Assembly (NCBI RefSeq): GCF_000315625.1
Contig: NW_005434667.1
Location: 1,133,474 to 1,197,473, forward strand
From: Guillardia theta CCMP2712
Taxonomy: Eukaryota; Protista; Cryptophyta
DNA: 64,000 bases
Direction of reading: 5' to 3'
Positions within the stretch are counted from its first letter, which is position 1; each line of letters starts with the position of its first letter. The position numbers and the translations under genes are program-made. A model generated the notes under the pieces. That model made no database searches. It had not been told where the DNA came from and saw only the letters and a program-made list of their open reading frames with translations. Shown here piece after piece: positions 1,972-23,700 of the stretch.

Positions 1972-4060
1972 ATGACGATCTTTAAGCTCGGAGCTCGAGG
2001 TCTGGCGATGGTGGGTCAATGGACGAGCAAAGGGGTTGTGCCTGCAAGGAGTTTCAGCTCCATGGCGAGTGAGCTGAGGGTGCTGACGGACTTGCGATCT
2101 CCTCACCTGTGGTATCCCCTTGCGAGGAAGATGAAGCGAAGGTATGAGACCGGGACAATCCGAGTCGTTGATGTCCTCCACTAGGTGGGTCCTGCACATA
2201 GGGCCAACTAATAGCGGGAAAACGTTCGAAGCTCTGCAGAGGCTGGCGGTAAGAGACTCTACGGGGAGAGCTGCGGGAGAGCAGTGAGTGACTTGTCGTG
2301 GCAGTCCGTAGAGTCGGGGAGATATTGCGGGCCCCTGAGGCTGCTGGCATGGGAGGTGTATGACAAGCTGAAAACAGGAGCAGTGAACGGGTCCATGCCC
2401 AGCCGGCCTTACCTGCAAGGCTGACGCTTCCTGCAGGAAGCCGGTGCGATGTAGCTTGATGACAGGGCAGGAGAAAGTGTTCGACCCCAAGGCAAACCAT
2501 ACCTCGTCGACTGTTGAGATGGCGGACCTTGACAAGGTGATCGACGTGGCGGTCATCGACGAAGTTCAGATGCTCGAGAGCAACGATCGAGGATGGGCGT
2601 GGACGCGAGCATTGCTGGGACTTCCTGCTGCTGAGATCCACCTGTGCGGCGAGCCACGGGCACAAGAGCTGATCACGAAGCTGTGTGACCTCTGTGAGGA
2701 TGAGCTGGAAGTGAAGGAGTACGAGAGACTGTCGTCGCTATCGGTCGCCAACCATTCTTTGGAGGGCAGCCTTCGCAACATTCAACGAGGGGATTGTATT
2801 GTAGCGTTTGGGAGGTCAAAGATTCATCAGCTGAAGCGCGACATTGAGGCGAAGACTCCATTCCGCTGCTGCGTCGTGTACGGCTCGCTGCCTCCTCTGA
2901 CTCGGCAGGAACAAGCGAAGCTGTTCAACGAGAGGGGTTCGTTTCCTAACGGTCAAAGCTTCGACGTGCTTGTGGCCTCGGATGCCATCGGGATGGGGCT
3001 GAATCTGGAGATCTCGCGGGTTGTTTTCAGCTCCCTGCGCAAGTTTGACGGGCAAGAGGAAAGGCTCTTGACAGCTTCAGAGATCCGGCAGATCGGAGGA
3101 CGAGCAGGAAGGTTCGGGACCAACACAGTGGAAGGGATTGTGACGAGCTTGCACAACAAAGACCTCCCGCTGCTGAAGCGAAGTTTCAAGACGGAGCTCC
3201 CTCAGATCGCGAAGGCTTGCCTCCGCCCGGAGATCGTCATGCTCGAGGATTTCGTTCACTCCATCCGGCACGTGTGGCCGCGGGAGGAGGGAGAAGACTC
3301 GCTATCGCTCGACACGGCCCTGCAGCTCTTCAAGGACTTTCACCAGACAGAAAGCAGCTTCTTTCTCGGGACGACCATCGACGAGTTGCGGGTGAGTAGG
3401 CAAGAGACGGAGGAGTTGGTTGACTTTGGCTGCAGGACCTCGCAAAGACGATTGAGTCTGTCAAGATGCCCCTCACGGATCGGTTCTCCTTCTGTTTGGC
3501 TCCGATCGATCTCAGCAAGGAGGATCGACGGAGAGCAGCATTCTACGAGATGGCGCGCATGTACTCTGAGAAGAGACTCGTGAGGATCTCGCAGGTCGCC
3601 ACGTTCAACAACAGGATCCCCGACACCATGTTCAAACTGCGAGAGGTTGACCTCCTCCTCCCTCCTCCCTCCTCCCTCCTCCCCCTCATTCCTCGTGGCA
3701 GGCGGAAGAGACGCACGTCATCCTCGAGTTGTACGCATGGCTAGCTAATCGCTTTGAAAACGCTTTCTGTGACTTAGAGATCGTTAAGCGACAGATCGCA
3801 AAGAACAGCATCCTCATCCAGGTACTCCTTGGACTCCCTCCCCCCCCCTTTCTCGTCTTCCTCCCCCTTCTCTCGTTTCCCCTCCTTGTCCTTCGACTCG
3901 TCAGTGATGGAGGCTTGTCATGCTGTCACCTCACCAGCTACTCCAGGAGGGTCTCAGGAGGCTGACGAGGGAGGCGAGGTCGCAACTTCGTCAGGGGAGG
4001 CCGAGGAGAGAACTAGAGGAGGAACCTGAGTTGCAGTCGGAAGAAACCGTTTCGACGTAG
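1972..4060 (+). CDS. SUV3: Mitochondrial ATP-dependent RNA helicase SUV3 (multi-exon)
   Basis: Spliced motifs: P-HLWYPLARKMKR, HIGPTNSGKT (motif I), GPLRLLAWEVY, IDEVQM..RGWAWTRALLG, VLVASDAIGMGLNL, QIGGRAGRFG. The N-terminus is rich in basic and hydroxylated residues, like a mitochondrial presequence. Confidence 0.93.
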
Positions 4061-8590: not shown

Positions 8591-9112
8591 CTACAAACAA
8601 TCAACCTCAGCATTCGAAGGGTTTGCGCCACAAATTCGTCCAAAACACATTTTACGACATCAACAGAAGCTCGCTGCTCATGATCGTTGGTTCTATCACT
8701 ACCCCATTACATCTTATGATACCTGTCGCTCAGACTGACACTCGGAGCTACTCGTTTCTGCTTATCTCCCTCCATCCTCTCTCAGTTTCTGGTCATCCTT
8801 GAAATCGCTGGCACATTCCATACAACCGTCCTCCATCTTCCATCTTGAACCTGCTAGTCCAGCCGCTACCTCCTCTCCTCCCTCGCTCTAGTTTGCTTTC
8901 GCTCACTTTCCTTCCCTTCTGTGCTGTTTCTCCTCCTCGTCCTTCCCTCCCTCCCCACACCCACTTCCGCAGTCGCATCTTTGGTCGGCCATATTTGTGG
9001 TGAACCGCATCTCAGGCAGAGCCGAATTTTTTGTTGCCGTCGGGCAGCGGTCCATGCGGATCGATGCCGAGCTCGAAGGGGAACAGCGGACGACGATGAA
9101 GAGAAAGTGAGA

Positions 9113-9181
9113 GGAGCAGGAGCAGGAGCAGGAGCAGGATCAGGAGCAGGAGCGGGAGCGGGAGCGGGAGCGGGAGCAGGA
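9113..9181 (+). repeat. (GGAGCA/GGAGCG)n hexamer microsatellite in the divergent intergenic region
   Basis: Directly visible in the sequence. Confidence 0.9.
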
Positions 9182-9208
9182 GGATCCCTCACGGGGCTCA
9201 GGGAGCAG

Positions 9209-12200
9209 ATGGACGAGAACTTGATAATGAAAGAGTCTTGGTGCTGAGAGCGAAAAGGGGAGGGAGGGAGAGCGAGGGAGGGAGGGAGGGAGGGAGGCTG
9301 AAGCAAGAGAGGGGCTTGAAAGAATGCAAACATTAGTAGATGAATTCCTTGCAACCGCACAATCCTTCCCCGAACACAGCGCGATCGAGCTGGCCGATGG
9401 ATTCAGCATCTCCTATCAGCATGTGAGCTCGCGATCAGATGTACGTCACGTGTGATCACACCTGACAGGTGAAGATGCTGGTTCTTCATGCTGCATGGGT
9501 GTTGGCAAAGCATGGAGTGCAGCAGGAATATGCTATTGCGCTGACAGCCGACGAGGGTTTGACTATGGTGCTGAGCCAACTCGCAATCCTTGTGGCAGGA
9601 GGCTATTTCGTTCCTCTCGACACGAAGCTGCCTCATGAGTGAGAATAAAGAACAACAACAAGATGGTTCAATGCCCACTGATTTGATACAGACGACTGCA
9701 ATACATAATCCAAGATTGCAAGGCGAGACTGATTGTTTGTCATGATCAAAACATTGCCAAGGTTCTGCTTTCTTCAGATTGCTGTTTGTGCTGATACTTG
9801 AAACAGATCAACCAAGTCTTGGACGGATTGAAGGCTGGGGGTCAAACGAGTATGTCACCACCGACAGTCTTGTCGTGTAAAGAACTGTTTCCGGTGGACC
9901 TGGAGAGCTTAGTAGAGCTGTCGGGGTTCTTGTTGGGGATGTCAGCTGGTAGGCAACTAGCAACTTGTGATCTGCCAGTCACACAAGTAACTGCTCATCA
10001 TCTCTGTTGGGTCTACTACACATCTGGCTCGACGGGTCGGCCCAAGGGAGTCTTGTGCGAGCACCGCAATGCGCTAGCCTACGTCCGGAACCACCCTTTC
10101 TACTCTGAGATGTCGGAGAGCGCAAGGAAACGAGGAGAGGAAAAGCGCAAGAGAATTCTGTGCGCCAGCGCTTTCACCTTCGACCCTTCTTCCGGGGATA
10201 TCTTCGCTGCTCTGTGCCATGGCGACGTGCTCTGTCTTTCAAGCCGATCGAAGCTGATGGTAGACTTTGGTGAGACAATCCTGAGCTGTGGCGCGACCCA
10301 TGTGTGTAGCACTCCCATCCTATGGCGGACCATCCAGGAGCCGGTAGACAAGTATACAGAGCTAGAGGTCGTTGCTCTTGGGGGGGAGGCGATGCCACGG
10401 GAGCTGGTGGAGAAGTGGGCAGATCGTGTTTGTCTGTTGAATGTTTACGGGACGACGGAAGCGACTGTCTACCAGACGATGAGGAAGATGGAGGTCGGAG
10501 ACAACCCGAGGATGATCGGCAGACCTCTGACTGGAGTTCTGGTGAAGGTGATCGGTGAGGATGGAGAGGAGGCTAAGGAAGGGGAGACGGGCGAGTTGCA
10601 TGTGGGAGGAGAGCAGGTATCGCGCGGTTATCTTGGACTACCTGAGTTGACTGAGAGCAAATTCTACTCGCAAGAAACAAGATTCTACAGGACAGGAGAT
10701 CTGTTCCGTGTACTTGGAAGTGACATGGAGTTCATCGGTCGTCTTGATTCACAAGTGAAGCTGATGGGAATGCGGGTAGAACTGGGAGAGGTAGAAGAAT
10801 CGATCAAAGCAAGCGAGGTCGTGGTTGACACCGCTGTCTTGCTCGATGAGACCAAGACGTCTCTGTCTTGTGTATGCCAGCTGAAGGACGAACTGAAAGA
10901 TTTCAAAGACGACGATGTTGTCGAGAATGTGCTTCGTTCTCTTTGTAGTCGCATACTTCCCAAGGCTCTTTGTCCCAAGATTTACAAGTTCGTAGATCTT
11001 CTGCCGGTGTTGCCGACAGGAAAGCGCGACATTGTGACACTGAGGAAGCTTGTTAGCGAGGCCTCGCCTGTCCAGACGTCTGCGACTCATGGCTGGGTTC
11101 TGACAGAGATGGAGAGCAAAGTTGCGCATGTATGGAAGAGCGTCTTGGGGTTGAAAGAATCAGAAATATCTCCTCACGACGATTTCTTCCTTCTTGGAGG
11201 CGATTCTCTCGCAGCCCTGGCGGTCACTAAACGTCTCCTTCAATGGGAGCAGACAGGCTCTCTTGTAAGTTGCTTATTCATCCTGCCAGGTCTGAAGAAT
11301 ATCTCGGTGTAGGACGGAAACAAACCATTCCACTGGCCTGTTGACGGGGTCGTGCAAGGACCTTTATCTGTCAAATTCCTCCTCAAGCATTCGACTGTAC
11401 GTGACTATAGTTCACACCTACAGGCATTTCAATATTTCTATTCACTCTCTTTCTGCAAAGACTGACCTCGATCTAGTCGTCAAGCGTCGTACTACCGTCG
11501 TCGGAGGCCGAAGGGAACATGTTGAAGAGAAAGTTTGAAGCTGAAAGCATCGAGTCAATGTTTTCTTGAGCATGCATTGACGTACAACTGCTCACTGTCG
11601 TTGCAGGGACATGAGCCGAGGATATGAAAGTAGGGAAGAGAAGGAGGAGCTTTCAAGCTCAGCAAAGAAATCTATCAACTGCTTGTATAAAGTAAGGCAG
11701 ATCAACGTTACACAACCGATCTGACTGGTCGGTTGCAACAAGATTGCTCAGAAGGGCTGCTGGCTTCTAGCAGAAGTTCTGCTCCGAGACAAGCAAGTGA
11801 GACCGGATGGGTTCGTCACCAAGCATGTGAGTCGTTCAGAGCTTCGGATGGGATCTCACATTATCCCCCCGTCATCTCAGCATCCCGGGAATTCGCCGTT
11901 GCATCTTGCGGCAGCTTCTGGACACCTCGAGGTCCCTGAGAGCTCTCGCTCCCCTCGATGTGAAGGCGTTTGTAGGTTGTGAAGGCGCTGATCGAGGCAA
12001 ACGCTTCTCTCAACATTGTGAACCCGGTTGGCTTCTTGCTTGCCGACGTCTAGATTTCATGGTTGACCTCACCAGGAACACGTGACCCCATTACACCTTG
12101 CTGCTGCCAACTGCGTCAAGACGCTCAAGGTGGTTCGTTCCTCTTTTGTTGACGCATCATGACGTATCGTCTCAGTACCTGCTGGACTTGGGCGCTCCCG

Positions 12201-12639
12201 TAAGGTGCAAGGACGCAAACAAGCAGGTGGATCATGATGCTGTTGCCGTGTGAAGCGAGCTAAGTTGAACTCGTTGCAGACTGTGCTGCACTATGCTGCA
12301 AGGAGCGGCAACCTAGAGACTATCTCAGAGCTGCTGGCAAGAGGCTCCAAGGATCTTGATGCGTCCGATAAATGGAATCGACAGCCGCTACACTGGGCGA
12401 TCCTCAACGAGCATGCAGATGCCGTGGAGCTCCTGCTGAGAAATGGTGCGAAGCGAGAACCTCCGCTCATCCCGGATCGCGTGCACAGGTCGTAGTGATG
12501 ATTGTGAAGTGTCGAACTGACTCCAGCTGGTGCACTCAGGAGGAGGACAAGCTTGAAGGCAGAAGGACCTGTCGAACTCTCGCGACGACTCTTCCCCCCC
12601 GATCACAGAATCAACCTTCTTCTTGAGAGCTTCAAGTAA
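9209..12639 (+). CDS. NRPS-like protein: adenylation domain - thiolation (PCP) domain - ankyrin repeats (multi-exon; start approximate)
   Basis: A-domain cores: ILVAGGYFVPLD (A2), VYYTSGSTGRPKGV (A3), FTFDPS (A4), NVYGTTE (A5), GELHVGGEQVSRGYL (A6), YRTGD (A7), GRLDSQVKLMGMRVELGEVE (A8), PTGKRD (A10). PCP motif: DDFFLLGGDSL. Ankyrin repeats: SPLHLAAASGHLEV, TPLHLAAA, TVLHYAARSGN, QPLHWAILNEH. Stop TAA at 12637-12639 is followed by AATAAA. Confidence 0.9.
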
Positions 12640-12806
12640 CCTCAATAAAGTTTCTATTCTGCGCATCACTATGCAGCTAGCATGAGTTGAGTCAGTTAGT
12701 TCAGTAGGATAGAGAGGCGCTCGGGCAGACTTCCAAACCCTAGACTAGGTAGTGTATGTCTGGGTGAAAGGAATTTTTGACTTTTTTTTCCCCTCCCCGA
12801 CGGATC

Positions 12807-15029
12807 ATGGCAGCGGAGAAAGCGCGATGGCTTGCTCGTCTGGGCTGTCTGATAGCAGCACAGCAAGAGGAAGAGGAAGCGAGTCAGTCAGACAGCGAGC
12901 AGAAGGTCAGCCTGTCAAGCAGCAGCGAAATCAAGTACGTGAGGGCGATGCATCGGGCACAGAAGCAATCCACTGAGTTGTTGAGGACCTTGTTTCATGC
13001 CGTCGTGAATCAGCGTAATGCTGATGAAGGTGTTTTGCTGGAGGAATGTCTGCAGGTCCCGAGACATTGTTGTTGACGATTCTAGTTTCTGCCATTCACC
13101 TGATGTACAGGCTTATGACGAGATTGAACGAGCACGAAATCAGATCAAGGTTGAAGCAGACCAAGTTTATTTGAACCTGTTCTCTTCAATCCTCTCCGAA
13201 ATCGAACGATTTGCAGTCACCAATCACTCAACATCTCAACAAGACGGCAACGAGATAGGAAAGATCGTCTTATCTCTGGTAGTACAAAACATCCAAGTTC
13301 TTTCCCGATGATTGCTGCAGAACATCATGGATACCGCCAACATATTTGATGCATGTTTGGAACAAGAAATAGCATGCGGCATAAAACCACAAATTTCTGA
13401 TGTAATCCTTCACCTTCTCCACTCTCGCTTACCCGCGTTTTACAGTCTGGAAACGTGGAAATCGAGAACAGTGTCAGACGTACCTGCTGATAAGCTCTTC
13501 TTCAGACTAACACTTGGCATATTGACAGGCCTTGGTTCACTTCTAATCGAGTCCAAGAGTCAGCATCGTCTGGTTGAAGACATGTTGTGGGAAGAACGAG
13601 TACAGCTTCATAGTTCTCATATCTTCAAAGCTAACAAAGTAGTGCAGGCCAAGTGCGAAAAATTGGAGTCCAGGCTCCGCAACTTGCAGCATCGTTGTAC
13701 TTCTTTAGAGCGCAAGTTCCAAATCTCGAAAGAGAGCGGAAGGGACGATGGAAGTCTCAGTTGTTCTGAAGATAACACATTCCAAGGATTTCAGAGCCCT
13801 GGCGAGGATTTCAGCAATATCCTACCTAGTCACGAGTCGCTGACACCAACCAAGTTTGACAACCTTGGAGCATCCAGCACTCTACAGGAGCATGTCAACC
13901 AGCATTTCAATAAGTACCCCAGCGACAAAATAGAAGACTTGCAAACGTCTGCACAAGAGCATACTGGATCGAATCTGCATCCTCTCACACACAACAGCGT
14001 CGTCGTTGACACTGCAGAGGATAGCGCAACTGACGTTTCTCCTCAAAAATCTTTTGCTTCAATTCTGAAAGACTTCAGAAGATTATCAGGAAAGGAGCCC
14101 AAGAAAGCAGAACAAGAGCAGGATCCCTCCGAAGTGGAATTACGACAGATTTTTGGGATCAGGTTGTCACAATCATATCCCTTCACAATAGAAGAAGCGC
14201 AGTCGGAACACGTGAAGCATACTCTGCCGGTAATGCAATCAAGGGCGAATGATTGTTTTACTATGGTACAGGCTGGTAGCATTCTTGTAGGCATCAATGG
14301 CAAACGAACTAAACAGATGGCTCGCAAAGAAGTCCTTCAACACTTTCTGCAAGGAGATGTCGTACTGCAGGTATGCTTCATTAACAAGGCTGGATTCTCA
14401 TTCCTCACTCAGGTGCTGTCAAGCAACAACGACGTCGTCAGCTCTCGCATGGTTAAACCACCTTTTGCAGACAAGCCGCGTCACGTTTGGGCGTATAGCA
14501 TACATTTGATGCGTGAAAACAGTTTAGAATGAAGTCCATCTCAAGAAACCAGCAATCAAGATAATTTCAAATACAGAACTGCTTTATTCTTCTCAGCCTA
14601 CAGGGGTACAGATTACAAGTTTACTTGTACCTGCAATGAAAGAATCTCAGAAGAAAAATCATCCAATGCAACAGCTACCAGAAGTTTTGCTTCTTGGAAA
14701 ATCCAGTGGTGTGGGTAGGGTTCATGTCTCCACCATTGACTCCGTCCACACGATGGTAGAAGGCATAGCCGTTGTCGTTGCCACTGGGCCACTTATGTAT
14801 AGTCAAACATTTGCATCATGACAAAGAGGAAGAAACTCACGAAGTCGAGATCTTCCGTGGTTCTAACGTTAGCGAAAGTCTGCAACACCTGAAACATCTA
14901 ACAAAGCTGTCAAGCGATCGAGACAAGGAACCGCAACACTACTTGAAATCATCTCTGATCGGACTAGCATGCTCCATTGACATGTATCAACTAGGAGGTG
15001 CAAGGAGCAATGCAAACACAGAGCACTGA
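12807..15029 (+). CDS. Hypothetical coiled-coil protein with a PDZ-like segment (multi-exon; 3' end uncertain)
   Basis: ORFs 12777, 13018 and 13312 can be joined by short introns. VQAGSILVGINGKRTKQMARKEVLQHF resembles the C-terminal half of a PDZ domain. Confidence 0.6.
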
Positions 15030-19874: not shown

Positions 19875-20694
19875 TCAATCATCATCATCATCATCGGAAT
19901 TGTCTGAGACCGATGTGTCTGACAACGTCACCGAAGTGACCGAAGTGACCGAAGTCGCTGATAAAGTATCTTGTGACTCCTCCTCCTCAGCCTCCACCTC
20001 CTTCTCCGCGGTTTCTTCAGATGTCAATGCGCATGATTTCGCCATTTCCTCCCTCGGTGATGGTCTGCAGGGCAGATGAGAACGAGCTTGTATCGGAGAT
20101 CACTCACCTGATTGTTGGATCAGAGTTCTCAACAAACGTTTCGTTGTCCACGAAGTTGTGCAGGTATGACAAGACGTCGTAGGCCGCTGCGCTGGCATCC
20201 CTGCAGGCATGCATGAGCGCTACATCCCACACAGCCGGCGCGTACGCAGGAGAGGAGGGGTCCAAGGAGACTTGAATGTAAACTTCGATCACCCGGGAGT
20301 TTGCGATCTCTCGGAAGGAGTTGACGGTGTAGTCCTCATAGCAGAACTCCGGAGAGCTGTTGGGGGACAACAATCAAATCATCGGAGAGAAGAGGTCGCA
20401 GGTCGCAGCGGGAAGAGGAGGAGGGGTTCAGTGAAGTGATGAGCTACCTGCAGTGCAAGCAGACGGTGGAGATGGCTCTTGCTCCCTCCTGTCTGAGCTG
20501 GTAGGGCCCCGTGAGGCAAAGGGAGATCACTGCGCTCAACCCCCCTCGCTCCAGCACGTATCGCACAGTCTGCGGCTCTCCGCCGTAGATGACCGCGGCG
20601 ATGGTTCGCATGCCCTGGAAGGTGAGGATGAGGGGGGCAGGAGTAGAGAAGTAGAGAGAGAGAGAGAGAGAAAGAAGTAGAGAGAGAGAGAGAG

Positions 20695-20742
<48 letters not shown>

Positions 20743-23700
20743 AGAGAGAGAGAATGTTCGGAAAGGAGGAGAAAAAAGTGACGGAGGTGGAGGAGATGAG
20801 GGAGGAACAACCTGCCATTCGAGGTGTCGAGGCCTCTCTGAACTTCTCTCTGCCAGCTGCTCTGGTGTGAGCGTTTCTTCCGGGAGCGCACGGAGGATGT
20901 AGCTGCGCAACGACAGACGGGATATCTCCTTCTCTCCCCTGCTGATCCTCAACAAGTCTTTGAGGGCCTTTCTTGCGCAGAACTCGGACGCAGCGTGATC
21001 TTGAGCAGCGAAGTACATCAAACTCTTGCATCCTTCATAGACGATGGTGTAGTCGTCTGTGTATCCTTGAGCGATCGTTTCCAGGAGGTAGTCAAGCACG
21101 TTGTCTTGCATGAGACTCTTCTTCACCTCCATCAGCTCCCTCCCCTCGAAGTTCTTGATGAACATCCCGATGGCAGCGCAGGCAAGATTCTCAACCGTCT
21201 TGCCGACGTCGCTCTCTCGTATCTTGATCAGATCTCGAGCGATGTGCTCCTTCACCAGGTACTTCATCTGGTCAGCAAGGTGAGACAGCGCCGCGATGAT
21301 CATCATGCTGTTGGTGATGACGAGAGCCTCTTGCCGCCTCACGAGGATCAGCAGCGCGTCCAGCAGCCCCAGGTCGCAGACTTTGACCGCATGCTCGTCT
21401 CTCACGCACATGTAGAAGATGCAATTCAGAGCCCTGCCCACCACGTCCTCTCTCTGCGCAAAACTCGCCAGGTCAACCAGCGTGACCGGCAGGATCGGAT
21501 GGTTCAAGACAACTTGTAGCAGCTTCGGCTCGTGGCAGAGGAACTTCGAAAGGACTTGCATTGCAGCTGACTGCAGCTCGTCATGCCTTGCTCCGATCAT
21601 CTTGACGATGTACTCGAGTGCGTTATCCTGGATGAGCTTCTGCCTCCTCTCTGGGATCTCAGCGAGAGTCCAGAGGACTCGAGCAGCAATGCTCTGGATC
21701 CTAATGTCATCGACGAGGAGGAGCTCGAGAAAGGCTCCTGTCATGGAGGAGATGGAATCCTCTGCCAGGACGATCTCGGAGACGATGGGGTCGGACAGCA
21801 TGTTGGACAGCAGCTGACACCCCGAGCTCTTGACTCGAGAGTTGGATGAGGCAACCATGTTGCCAATCACTGCCAGACCTCCGATGGAAATGAGATGCAT
21901 CTGAGCCGCAGAGTCGTTCTCGCACCATCTTCCCAGCGCTTCACAGGAGGCAGCCTGAGCGAGGAAGGATGAGAATCATGTCAGACTTCAAGGCTCTTTT
22001 ACCTCCACATGCACACTCTCCGAGTGCAGGACGCTGTCGAGAAGGACATGCATGAAGTTGCGATGCGTCAATGCTGCCTTGCCCTCTGCCGAGTAGAATG
22101 CAAGGTTACCCACGAGGATGAAGCTCAGCCTCTGAAGGTCCTCGTTTGGCAACCTAGAGAGGATGGGTCAGTAGGGTCTCACAAGTCTGGATGACGCCAT
22201 ACTGGGTGAAGGAGGAGATTCTGTCCCAGATCTCGTCGTAGGTTGCGATCTCCTCTGCCTTGACTGGGTTGCAGCTCAAGTCCCGCAGCTCGGTGAGGCT
22301 CGCCATTGCTCGTTCAGGGTGAGAGAGGTCGACGATCTACCTCGCTGTTGTCAACGGGGCAGGAAGAAGACGTGAAGTACCAGGCCTGCGACACTTGAGT
22401 GCGTGGAGAAGGAGAAGCTGTGGACGGTGCTCGACGCTCTCCTCCATTTCAACAGCCATGCGATTTCAAACTTGCCGGCAAGATATTTCCCGATCTCATC
22501 CACGTGATCTCTGCAGCATAAGTGAGGAAATCAGAAGCAATGACGAAGAAGAGCTCACTTGCTCAGTGCAGCTCGGTACGCAATCAATTCCGCCAGGTTT
22601 CCATCAAAGAAGTGATGCCTTTTATGCTCTGAAAGGATGCCCTCTACCTCCACCACGCTCCTCCCAAGATATATCTGATCGATAGAGAGATCTATGGCCT
22701 CGTTCTCTTGGCTCCTGACAGAAGAGTTCCTTGAGGACATTCTGCTCTTCATTCTCTGCTTGATCGGGTCGTTCTTGTCGTCTACCTCTGTTACCAGAGT
22801 CCCAGGAGCGATAGCATCGCACTCGTCACCGTTGATCCACCATCTGACTCCCGTCTTTTCCTTCCTCACAGCAATGATCTGCGTCCTTTCCATGTCCACG
22901 TTGAGAGGAGACTGCCTAGCGACGTTCCCGAACAGCAGGGTGTAACATGATTGCCCTTCTTTGAGGTCAGCGCTGATTTCAATCCTGAACTTGTTGCTGG
23001 TATCGATGGCAGCCTGTCAGAAAGGTCAACTTGCAGAAGCGTGCAAGGAGAATCATTCACTAGCAGAGGCCAGGGCGCCGATCCCTCAGTGCATCGAGAC
23101 AGGACGACCACGAAGATTGTGAAAGAGGAGTCTCGGATATCACCTGGTTGCGTATTACATGTGCTCCCTCTACCCCTTTCACTCCTTTGGTTACCACTCA
23201 GCATGTCAAAGAACATGCTGTTGCCAGCCAGGCATAAGAACTGGCTCTTGCCATCGAAGCTTATCACAGGATGGATTCCTGTGTGCCATGGAATGAGTTG
23301 AGTGAAGAGAGTGGAAGAGGTTCAGCTTTGCTATGGGGTAAGATTGTCACCAGCTCGATTTCTGTGAAAGGTGGGCCTCAACTCAGCGATTTCTTGAGAC
23401 GCGCGCTCAGGGCGAGCAGCAGGGATAGGTGTGACTGGCGGATGCCATCCGGTCCTCCACGGTCGTGCTGTGCAGTAACAATTCAGAGCAGTTTGACGGC
23501 TGAGATCATAACGCACCCTCGTCTTCGATCGCCTCTACTCGACCCTTCTCTTGCTGTCCCCTCCTTTCAAGCTGTAACCCCAGCGTCACCATTCCTGCCC
23601 GCATGAACTCGGAAATTTCATTCGCGACCTGCTCGAGATTGAACCAGAGCGCCAGAGATGGCTCGTTCCTCCATGGAAGGGGCTTGGATCTTACAGGCTG

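Follow-up and report, generated by a model that had tools for sequence, protein, structure and literature searches.

In a window of 64,000 nucleotides (nt) of DNA from the cryptophyte Guillardia theta CCMP2712 (contig NW_005434667.1, positions 1,133,474 to 1,197,473 of the forward strand; coordinates below count from the first letter of the window unless another contig is named), positions 9324-12639 of the plus strand constitute one expressed nuclear gene with 14 exons and 13 tiny introns. Its predicted product of 891 amino acids (aa) combines an amino-acid adenylation (A) domain of the non-ribosomal peptide synthetase (NRPS) type, a thiolation or peptidyl carrier protein (T/PCP) domain and a C-terminal ankyrin (ANK) solenoid. 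Judged by sequence, the gene is a member of an old, large and widespread eukaryotic A-T-ANK family which is so far uncharacterised. We regard this gene model and the family membership as nearly certain. The explanation as a whole, i.e. an A-T-ANK enzyme that would load itself with an amino acid and dock a partner via its ankyrin repeats, is in our view about evenly balanced between right and wrong.

The gene model is based on a comparison of the region 8700-14600 (5901 letters) with the contigs of three transcriptome-type runs (sets X4, X12 and X13, which carry two organism labels and come from different studies) and with the raw reads of one RNA run. Introns in the eukaryotic DNA of the window are very short, and three stop-free frames within 9000-12900 hold the adenylation, carrier and ankyrin pieces. 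The contig sets span from 9317 (or 9522) to about 12663, with an outer reach from 9315/9317 to 12663, and within the compared region no contig depth was found upstream of 9291 or downstream of 12837. All three sets skip the identical 13 stretches of 44-54 nt each, and the 14 exons are spliced into a single open reading frame (ORF) of 891 aa. The RNA label of these runs is a guess by the alignment tool; that the contigs represent spliced RNA follows from the absence of all 13 introns. The raw-read RNA run contributed only two reads over the whole region and adds nothing to the gene model. Twelve of the 13 introns are bounded by GT..AG, some of them after a shift of the cut by 1-4 nt. For the thirteenth (11422-11474) the aligner lists AG..CT with two ambiguous bases, which is read as GC..AG after a 2-nt shift, so that one intron of this gene apparently uses GC-AG borders.

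An earlier note, made from the letters of the window alone, had proposed a single A-T-ANK transcript at 9209-12639. The contigs of all three runs cross the 13 joints and connect the ankyrin exons to the A-T exons, which does away with the idea of a separate ankyrin gene. The 3' end given there is correct, with the stop codon at 12637-12639. The start had been placed about 115 nt too early: the coding region begins with the ATG at 9324, because an in-frame stop at 9228-9230 is followed by no ATG before that position. The coding region and its exons, whose boundaries are movable by 1-4 nt where both sides fit, are as follows.

9324..12639, plus strand: entire A-T-ANK coding region, single ORF of 891 aa, 13 joints in three runs
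9324-9422, 9469-9638, 9692-9759, 9805-11264, 11313-11421, 11475-11559, 11607-11691, plus strand: exons 1-7, from transcript contigs
11743-11826, 11881-11929, 11974-12025, 12075-12127, 12174-12222, 12276-12485, 12537-12639, plus strand: exons 8-14, from transcript contigs

The only public protein for this locus found by protein search is P0152, a 277-aa fragment of the A domain, which was compared with window positions 9795-11309. The public annotation thus appears truncated or split relative to the 891-aa transcript-backed model. Just 5' of the start codon, at 9089-9307, lies a GA/AG-rich microsatellite that reads as runs of Glu, Arg, Gly and Ala in all frames; as a repeat it was left out of the read alignment.

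By Pfam and motif mapping, the protein is laid out as A domain, carrier domain, low-complexity linker and ankyrin solenoid. The A domain begins at residue 1, and an N-terminal targeting extension is absent. The parts were mapped to the following positions.

9324..11030, plus strand: A domain, residues ~1-521, exons 1-4 (PF00501, PF13193, TIGR01733)
9589-9621 (A2), 10014-10049 (A3), 10179-10190 (A4, FDPS) and 10440-10460 (A5), plus strand: A-domain core motifs
10590-10634 (A6), 10686-10703 (A7), 10737-10796 (A8) and 11013-11030 (A10, with its Lys), plus strand: A-domain core motifs
11100..11476, plus strand: carrier (T/PCP) domain, residues ~545-636 (PF00550)
11196-11210, plus strand: GGDSL motif, phosphopantetheine Ser580 at 11205-11207
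11241-11360, plus strand: carrier insert of ~20 aa between helix 2 and helix 3, with intron 11265-11312 inside
11477..11670, plus strand: Ser/Glu/Lys-rich linker of ~49 aa, residues 637-685, no Pfam match, unaligned and variable among homologues
11671..12636, plus strand: ankyrin solenoid, residues 686-891 (Ank, Ank_2, family alignment)
11671-11886 (N-cap), 11887-12075 (ANK1), 12076-12217 (ANK2) and 12218-12372 (ANK3), plus strand: parts of the ankyrin solenoid
12373-12465 (ANK4) and 12466-12636 (degenerate terminal repeat with loop), plus strand: parts of the ankyrin solenoid

In the A domain, Pfam gave an AMP-binding match of 2.9e-42 on exon 4 (PF00501), with further matches on exons 2 and 3, as well as AMP-binding_C (PF13193). 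The best NCBIfam model was the amino-acid adenylation domain TIGR01733, with 241.6 bits on the exon-4 ORF alone; this ORF stays below the full-length cut-off of 317.4 since the first 150 residues sit in other exons. None of the core motifs A2-A8 and A10 is missing, and Asp235 and Lys517 are kept. On these profiles and motifs the N-terminal part is assigned to the NRPS-type amino-acid adenylation domains of the ANL superfamily. The following segment is likewise assigned to the carrier domains from its predicted PP-binding fold with the Ser of GGxS at the start of helix 2; PP-binding (PF00550) was matched with 1.3e-8 and 35.4 bits (cut-off 20.8), covering model positions 2-41 only. This domain is split by the intron 11265-11312, and its end spans the next intron (11422-11474). 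The ankyrin region gave 1.4e-13 for Ank and 1.6e-13 for Ank_2 and is built of four canonical repeats with an N-terminal cap in front and, after a loop, a degenerate last repeat behind. The Pfam scan of every exon revealed no other domain, in particular no condensation (C, PF00668), thioesterase (TE, PF00975) or reductase (R, PF07993) domain. What the earlier note had read from the letters here, namely complete adenylation cores with an intact GGDSL site, a carrier insert of some 20 aa, about four ankyrin repeats and no C, TE or R domain, holds up throughout. The two capping elements are to be added to the four repeats, and the junction QWEQTGSL|DGNKPF noticed in the insert is exactly the 11264|11313 splice. 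At the corresponding place the orthologous Hanusia phi transcript model P0151 (577 aa) reads, after QWEQTGSL, into a sequence like the intron of the Guillardia gene and then into exon 5 out of frame; it looks like a retention of the carrier-insert intron, and the model stops without ankyrin repeats.

The gene is not the one-off for which it had been taken, as a large family is already present in the databases under automatic names. These include misleading ones copied from bacterial synthetases, such as ppsB, srfAB, tycA and SimD6. A search with the A-T exon gave a Hanusia phi protein as the best match (75% identity) with Baffinella next, and it found proteins of 830-882 aa with AMP-binding and Ank domains, including a Symbiodinium protein misnamed ppsB. 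A profile search (alignment A1), whose search words came mostly from one clade, recovered few members; new among them were a Chrysochromulina protein and marine metagenome clusters. The search with P0158 yielded more than 110 cluster representatives with AMP-binding and Ank, among them many Chytridiomycota (e.g. Spizellomyces punctatus SPPG_07049, Geranomyces, Powellomyces, Chytriomyces and Cladochytrium), Balamuthia mandrillaris, several dinoflagellates, Cymbomonas, Tetraselmis and sequences from MMETSP and Tara. The ESM Atlas holds two eukaryotic clusters, one of which is titled 'Ligase/ankyrin repeat fused protein'. Overall, the family ranges over cryptophytes, dinoflagellates, a haptophyte, green algae, many chytrid fungi and Balamuthia. 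In an exhaustive representative search the best 150 matches were all giant multimodular NRPSs, whose scores are summed over modules and hide single-module relatives. No characterised A-T-ANK enzyme turned up in the literature searches; all that was found there is a passing mention on dinoflagellates by Beedessee et al. (2019, PMC6361889), who remark that the polyketide synthase (PKS) and NRPS domains which stand alone in Symbiodiniaceae frequently come with fused ankyrin, HEAT or PPR repeats.

All 13 A-T-ANK members scanned with Pfam contain A, T and ANK and nothing else, and in the intron-poor contigs of green picoalgae relatives are found as single uninterrupted ORFs. In the Guillardia genome itself, a second A-T-ANK gene lies on contig C36 at ~335195-338323 (L015:4195-7324, minus strand), with an A domain that is 38% identical and has the specificity code DPGCAGTVYK. 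Its carrier (with GGNS, not GGDS) and its ankyrin repeats share one open frame of 760 aa, which provides independent proof of the fusion, as T and ANK are held in the same frame. By the sequences assembled here, the A-T-ANK fusion is ancient and selected. A third family member is found on contig C8 at ~179600-183700 (L016:2636-6689, minus strand), with the A-domain code DPGLAGVVYK and the family carrier motif GGDSLAALR ... FGELLGVFAPAELLARP; at the expected ankyrin position this locus shows runs of N (assembly gaps) and low-complexity sequence. In the 1137-aa protein P0547 of Effrenium voratum a calcineurin-like metallophosphoesterase replaces the ankyrin part (A-T-Metallophos) and the family pocket code is kept.

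The relationship to bacterial proteins was analyzed with IQ-TREE on the A-T region. A branch with a support of 100% in the Shimodaira-Hasegawa-like approximate likelihood ratio test (SH-aLRT) divides the 24 sampled bacterial A-T proteins, together with one further Guillardia gene of the ATRR kind (contig C101, see below), from the eukaryotic family; the trees are unrooted, and the family is monophyletic only if the root falls within the bacterial part. The gene studied here clusters with Hanusia, Baffinella and one metagenomic sequence. The C36 and C8 genes are placed in other clades, and the duplication must therefore be old. A FastTree of 165 rows agrees with this picture.

The ten specificity positions of the A domain were mapped by motif (A4, the GGE region, A5 and A10). 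As a control, bacterial rows gave the textbook codes DILQLGMIWK (Gly), DAFFVGGTFK (Val) and DAWTVAAVCK (Phe), so the mapping can be considered valid. The Guillardia protein has the code DPGCAGVVYK, and about 140 family members follow, with few deviations, the pattern DPG-[LCQT]-[AST]-G-[TVAG]-V-Y-K. No charged residue was found in the pocket. Since Asp235 and Lys517 are kept, the substrate should bear an amino and a carboxyl group. The near invariance of the code argues for one conserved substrate from chytrids to algae, unlike what is expected for diversifying secondary metabolism. A seemingly special kinship to a Gly-activating module, suggested by the linear gramicidin synthase LgrA (Protein Data Bank match of 1e-87), was rejected: two LgrA modules add up to this value (119.5 + 176.2 bits), and TycA scores at least as high as the better of them.

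Conservation outside the A domain was assessed in 111 aligned members. The phosphopantetheine Ser is retained in 23 of 23 relatives checked, and the conservation of the Ser motif in the alignment is ~0.9. The carrier insert is common to the whole family and varies in length, and PF00550 thus matches model positions ~2-45 only. At its C-terminal end, leading into helix 3, the insert carries the conserved motif G-x-FGE-x-LG-x-x-AP-x-x-LL-x-RP. In ANK3 (D...QT.LH.AAR.G) the residues D, Q, H, AAR and G and in ANK4 (D.WGRTPLHWA..NGH) the residues D, W, R, LHWA, N and H are conserved at ~0.9. For the part from the T domain to the C-terminus, the AlphaFold model of the homologue P0185 was used (mean predicted local distance difference test score, pLDDT, 80.7). 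In it, a four-helix carrier domain whose insert is disordered is joined by a short linker to six ankyrin helix pairs, the last of which follows a disordered loop. Foldseek with this model matched only designed ankyrin repeat proteins (DARPins) and natural ankyrin proteins. Thus, in the linker and tail neither Pfam nor the P0185 model nor Foldseek gave any sign of a concealed TE, R or C fold.

Based on established NRPS chemistry and the intact motifs, we propose that a phosphopantetheinyl transferase (PPTase), of which one is encoded in the genome, would prime Ser580 to the holo form. The A domain would then adenylate one amino acid and thioesterify it onto its own arm. In a third and weaker step the ankyrin solenoid may dock a partner, either the protein that accepts the aminoacyl group or a transferase acting in trans, and a nucleophile of this partner would take over the group. 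No family member has a release domain, so the aminoacyl group would have to leave in trans. Docking of a protein is favoured because the only other conserved structured part is the ankyrin region, which is almost always a protein-binding fold. Hand-off of the tethered aminoacyl group to a protein partner via the ankyrin repeats is therefore a plausible reading of these sequences; for it we count the lack of a release domain in about 140 relatives, the conservation of ANK3 and ANK4, the housekeeping contexts of the genes described below and a genome without a condensation domain above the cut-off. The logic of docking parallels that proposed for AASDH/ACSF4, in which A-T is combined with a beta-propeller scaffold.

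Several points weigh against this reading. In the Guillardia protein and in its cryptophyte and Symbiodinium relatives, the carrier insert has only a degenerate form of the FGE motif. Much of the conservation in ANK3 and ANK4 is presumably the general ankyrin consensus, and only the two Trp of ANK4 and the K-Q of ANK3 look specific for the family. The structure model is that of a homologue with 25-35% identity to the Guillardia protein over the modelled region. Furthermore, at their 5' end the contigs reach only 7-9 nt beyond the ATG. Taking both sides together, we rate the docking and hand-off mechanism taken by itself at slightly less than an even chance. A more specific form of it, in which the ankyrin repeats would recruit a specific protein and the amino acid would be attached to a side chain or terminus of this target in a so far undescribed, ribosome-independent aminoacylation, we consider rather unlikely. 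If true, this would constitute an ancient eukaryotic system of post-translational modification, with AASDH as its beta-propeller-bearing analogue or relative.

As an alternative without a protein partner, the amino acid could be released to a free small nucleophile (an amine, alcohol or nucleotide) as by the Drosophila beta-alanyl-amine synthase Ebony, with the ankyrin groove or the carrier insert binding the acceptor. A pocket code that is invariant across supergroups would fit one conserved metabolite, and the C-terminal module can be swapped, as seen from the metallophosphoesterase of P0547 and from a putative propeller resembling those binding pyrroloquinoline quinone (PQQ) on Guillardia contig C55. 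Ankyrin domains can also bind small ligands, e.g. that of RNase L binds 2',5'-oligoadenylate (2-5A). However, catalytic residues and a known condensation fold are missing from the A-T-ANK protein, and ankyrin repeats are overwhelmingly protein binders. We give this possibility only a small chance. Like the Guillardia protein, Ebony is a one-module A-T-X enzyme; it loads an amino acid and hands it on to an acceptor with no canonical C domain involved. Its X, however, is a condensation domain that is catalytic and selects the amine, whereas X in the Guillardia protein is a solenoid of six ankyrin repeats with no enzyme fold.

Anchoring or regulation is to our mind similarly doubtful. In such a scheme the ankyrin part would localise the enzyme to a membrane, the cytoskeleton or an organelle surface, or would autoinhibit it. 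The thioester would be discharged by hydrolysis or by exchange with coenzyme A (CoA) or another thiol, the protein being an amino-acid sensor or an unusual supplier of acyl thioesters. The absence of a release domain, the long flexible linker before the ankyrin repeats and the lack of an N-terminal targeting extension are in line with this. A carrier domain whose Ser is conserved in all members would, however, be costly if the product were merely hydrolysed, and the conserved motif of the carrier insert suggests a specific interface.

A further alternative is a trans-acting loading didomain, the ankyrin repeats of which would dock onto a PKS/NRPS megasynthase that takes the amino acid as starter or extender. 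For the stand-alone domains with ankyrin, HEAT or PPR repeats in Symbiodiniaceae an action in trans has been suggested (Beedessee et al. 2019, PMC6361889), and free-standing A-T proteins are the nearest bacterial relatives of the family. In the whole Guillardia genome, however, no condensation domain (PF00668) was found above the Pfam cut-off, and the matches to ketosynthases (KS) are only a few, in short frames. For this reason a role as a loading module of an assembly line is unlikely in this organism. In addition, a single code across supergroups is ill-suited to diversifying secondary metabolism, and the family resides amid housekeeping genes in the tiny genomes of green picoalgae and in chytrids, with no cluster around it.

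The same is seen in the Guillardia window, where, in line with the lack of biosynthetic neighbours described by the earlier note, the gene is flanked upstream by a fragment of a Suv3-type DExQ helicase (2444-3580, plus strand). Further neighbours are a downstream 406-aa ORF (13312-14529), which Pfam does not match and the aligned transcript contigs do not cover, and an ARM-repeat (ARMC5-like) protein (20536-21897, minus strand). The green picoalgal orthologue is flanked by genes for 1-deoxy-D-xylulose 5-phosphate (DXP) reductoisomerase, a glutathione S-transferase (GST), DnaJ, WD40 and neurobeachin proteins, and in three chytrid genomes the neighbours are mutually unrelated and none of them is biosynthetic. 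Housekeeping neighbours were thus found in every lineage checked and differ between lineages; apart from the local synteny of close relatives, the green picoalgal contigs and the three chytrid genomes contain no conserved neighbours that hint at a function. We consider the loading didomain improbable.

Finally, an artefact, i.e. two adjacent genes for A-T and ankyrin, a pseudogene or bacterial contamination, might be suspected from the 277-aa public fragment P0152 and the guessed RNA label of the contig runs, yet its probability is negligible given contigs that lack all 13 introns and contain one uninterrupted ORF, homologues with the same architecture as single ORFs, intact catalytic motifs and thirteen spliceosomal introns that exclude a bacterial contaminant.

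Compared with known systems, the A-T-ANK enzyme is a further form of the A-T-X kind and not categorically new. A close parallel is AASDH, which is likewise a single-module eukaryotic A-T enzyme with a C-terminal scaffold without established catalytic role in place of C, TE or R. The pocket of human AASDH begins with DP and has A-G-V in the middle. In contrast to the ankyrin solenoid of the Guillardia protein, AASDH ends in a PQQ-like beta-propeller, and the respective model PF13570 matched no exon of the gene. AASDH (ACSF4-U26) is described as an enzyme that activates beta-alanine (PMC10531068, citing Drozak et al. 2014); its acceptor is not known, and a role in post-translational modification has been suggested for it (PMC10531068). 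A search of the ESM Atlas with the A-T exon under exclusion of ankyrin families gave bacterial A-T clusters only and no ACSF4-type cluster.

A possible link to AASDH, a resemblance that the earlier note had suspected from the pocket motifs, is offered indirectly by contig C55 of the Guillardia genome, where at ~61000-66100 (L019:4021-9113, plus strand) an A domain with the family-type pocket code DPGCGGLVYK precedes two matches to PF13570, the beta-propeller model of ACSF4, which are weak and colinear (E-values 1.9e-5 and 2.9e-4). This locus may represent an A-T-propeller gene of the AASDH kind that is divided into many small exons. In the IQ-TREE analysis it clusters with the clade of the A-T-ANK gene at 9324-12639 (support 94-95); its branch is very long, however, and its exons were only roughly concatenated, so that this placement is given little weight.

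Lys2, the carboxylic acid reductases and ATRR share with the Guillardia protein a stand-alone A-T core in eukaryotic primary metabolism. They differ from it in the reductase domain (PF07993) that releases their product and is absent here. The nearest outside relatives, with 33-36% identity over A-T, are bacterial free-standing A-T didomains of ~620 aa, e.g. from Streptomyces and annotated as 'non-ribosomal peptide synthetase'. These have the same chemistry up to the thioester but contain neither ankyrin repeats nor the carrier insert, have different and varied codes and lie on the far side of the branch with 100% support. In ACBD6 and zDHHC13/17, a module that carries or transfers acyl groups is fused to ankyrin repeats, and the repeats recruit the target of acylation. 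These proteins have unrelated folds (acyl-CoA-binding and DHHC, respectively), handle fatty acyl groups and are non-homologous, so that they may serve only as a functional analogy to the proposed hand-off.

Lys2, Ebony, ATRR and AASDH are among the few NRPS-type enzymes in eukaryotic core biology. The A-T-ANK proteins constitute a second A-T-scaffold family. They occur in chytrids, in an amoebozoan and in several algal lineages that are unrelated to one another, their pocket is nearly frozen, and they lack a release domain. The identity of the loaded amino acid and that of its recipient become testable questions in this family, and the answer may also illuminate AASDH. Some of the organisms that carry a family gene, e.g. 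Spizellomyces punctatus and Ostreococcus, are genetically manipulable.

Two further genes with AMP-binding domains were observed in the Guillardia genome. On contig C101 (L017:3415-7583, minus strand) an A-T-R-KR gene (KR, ketoreductase; AMP-binding, PP-binding, NAD_binding_4 and adh_short) has the architecture of the fungal glycine-betaine reductase ATRR; its A domain groups with the bacterial proteins and not with the A-T-ANK family. On contig C31 (L018:2537-9997, plus strand) an open frame of more than 2480 aa combines a family-2 glycosyltransferase with a full AMP-binding and an AMP-binding_C domain, an unusual fusion.

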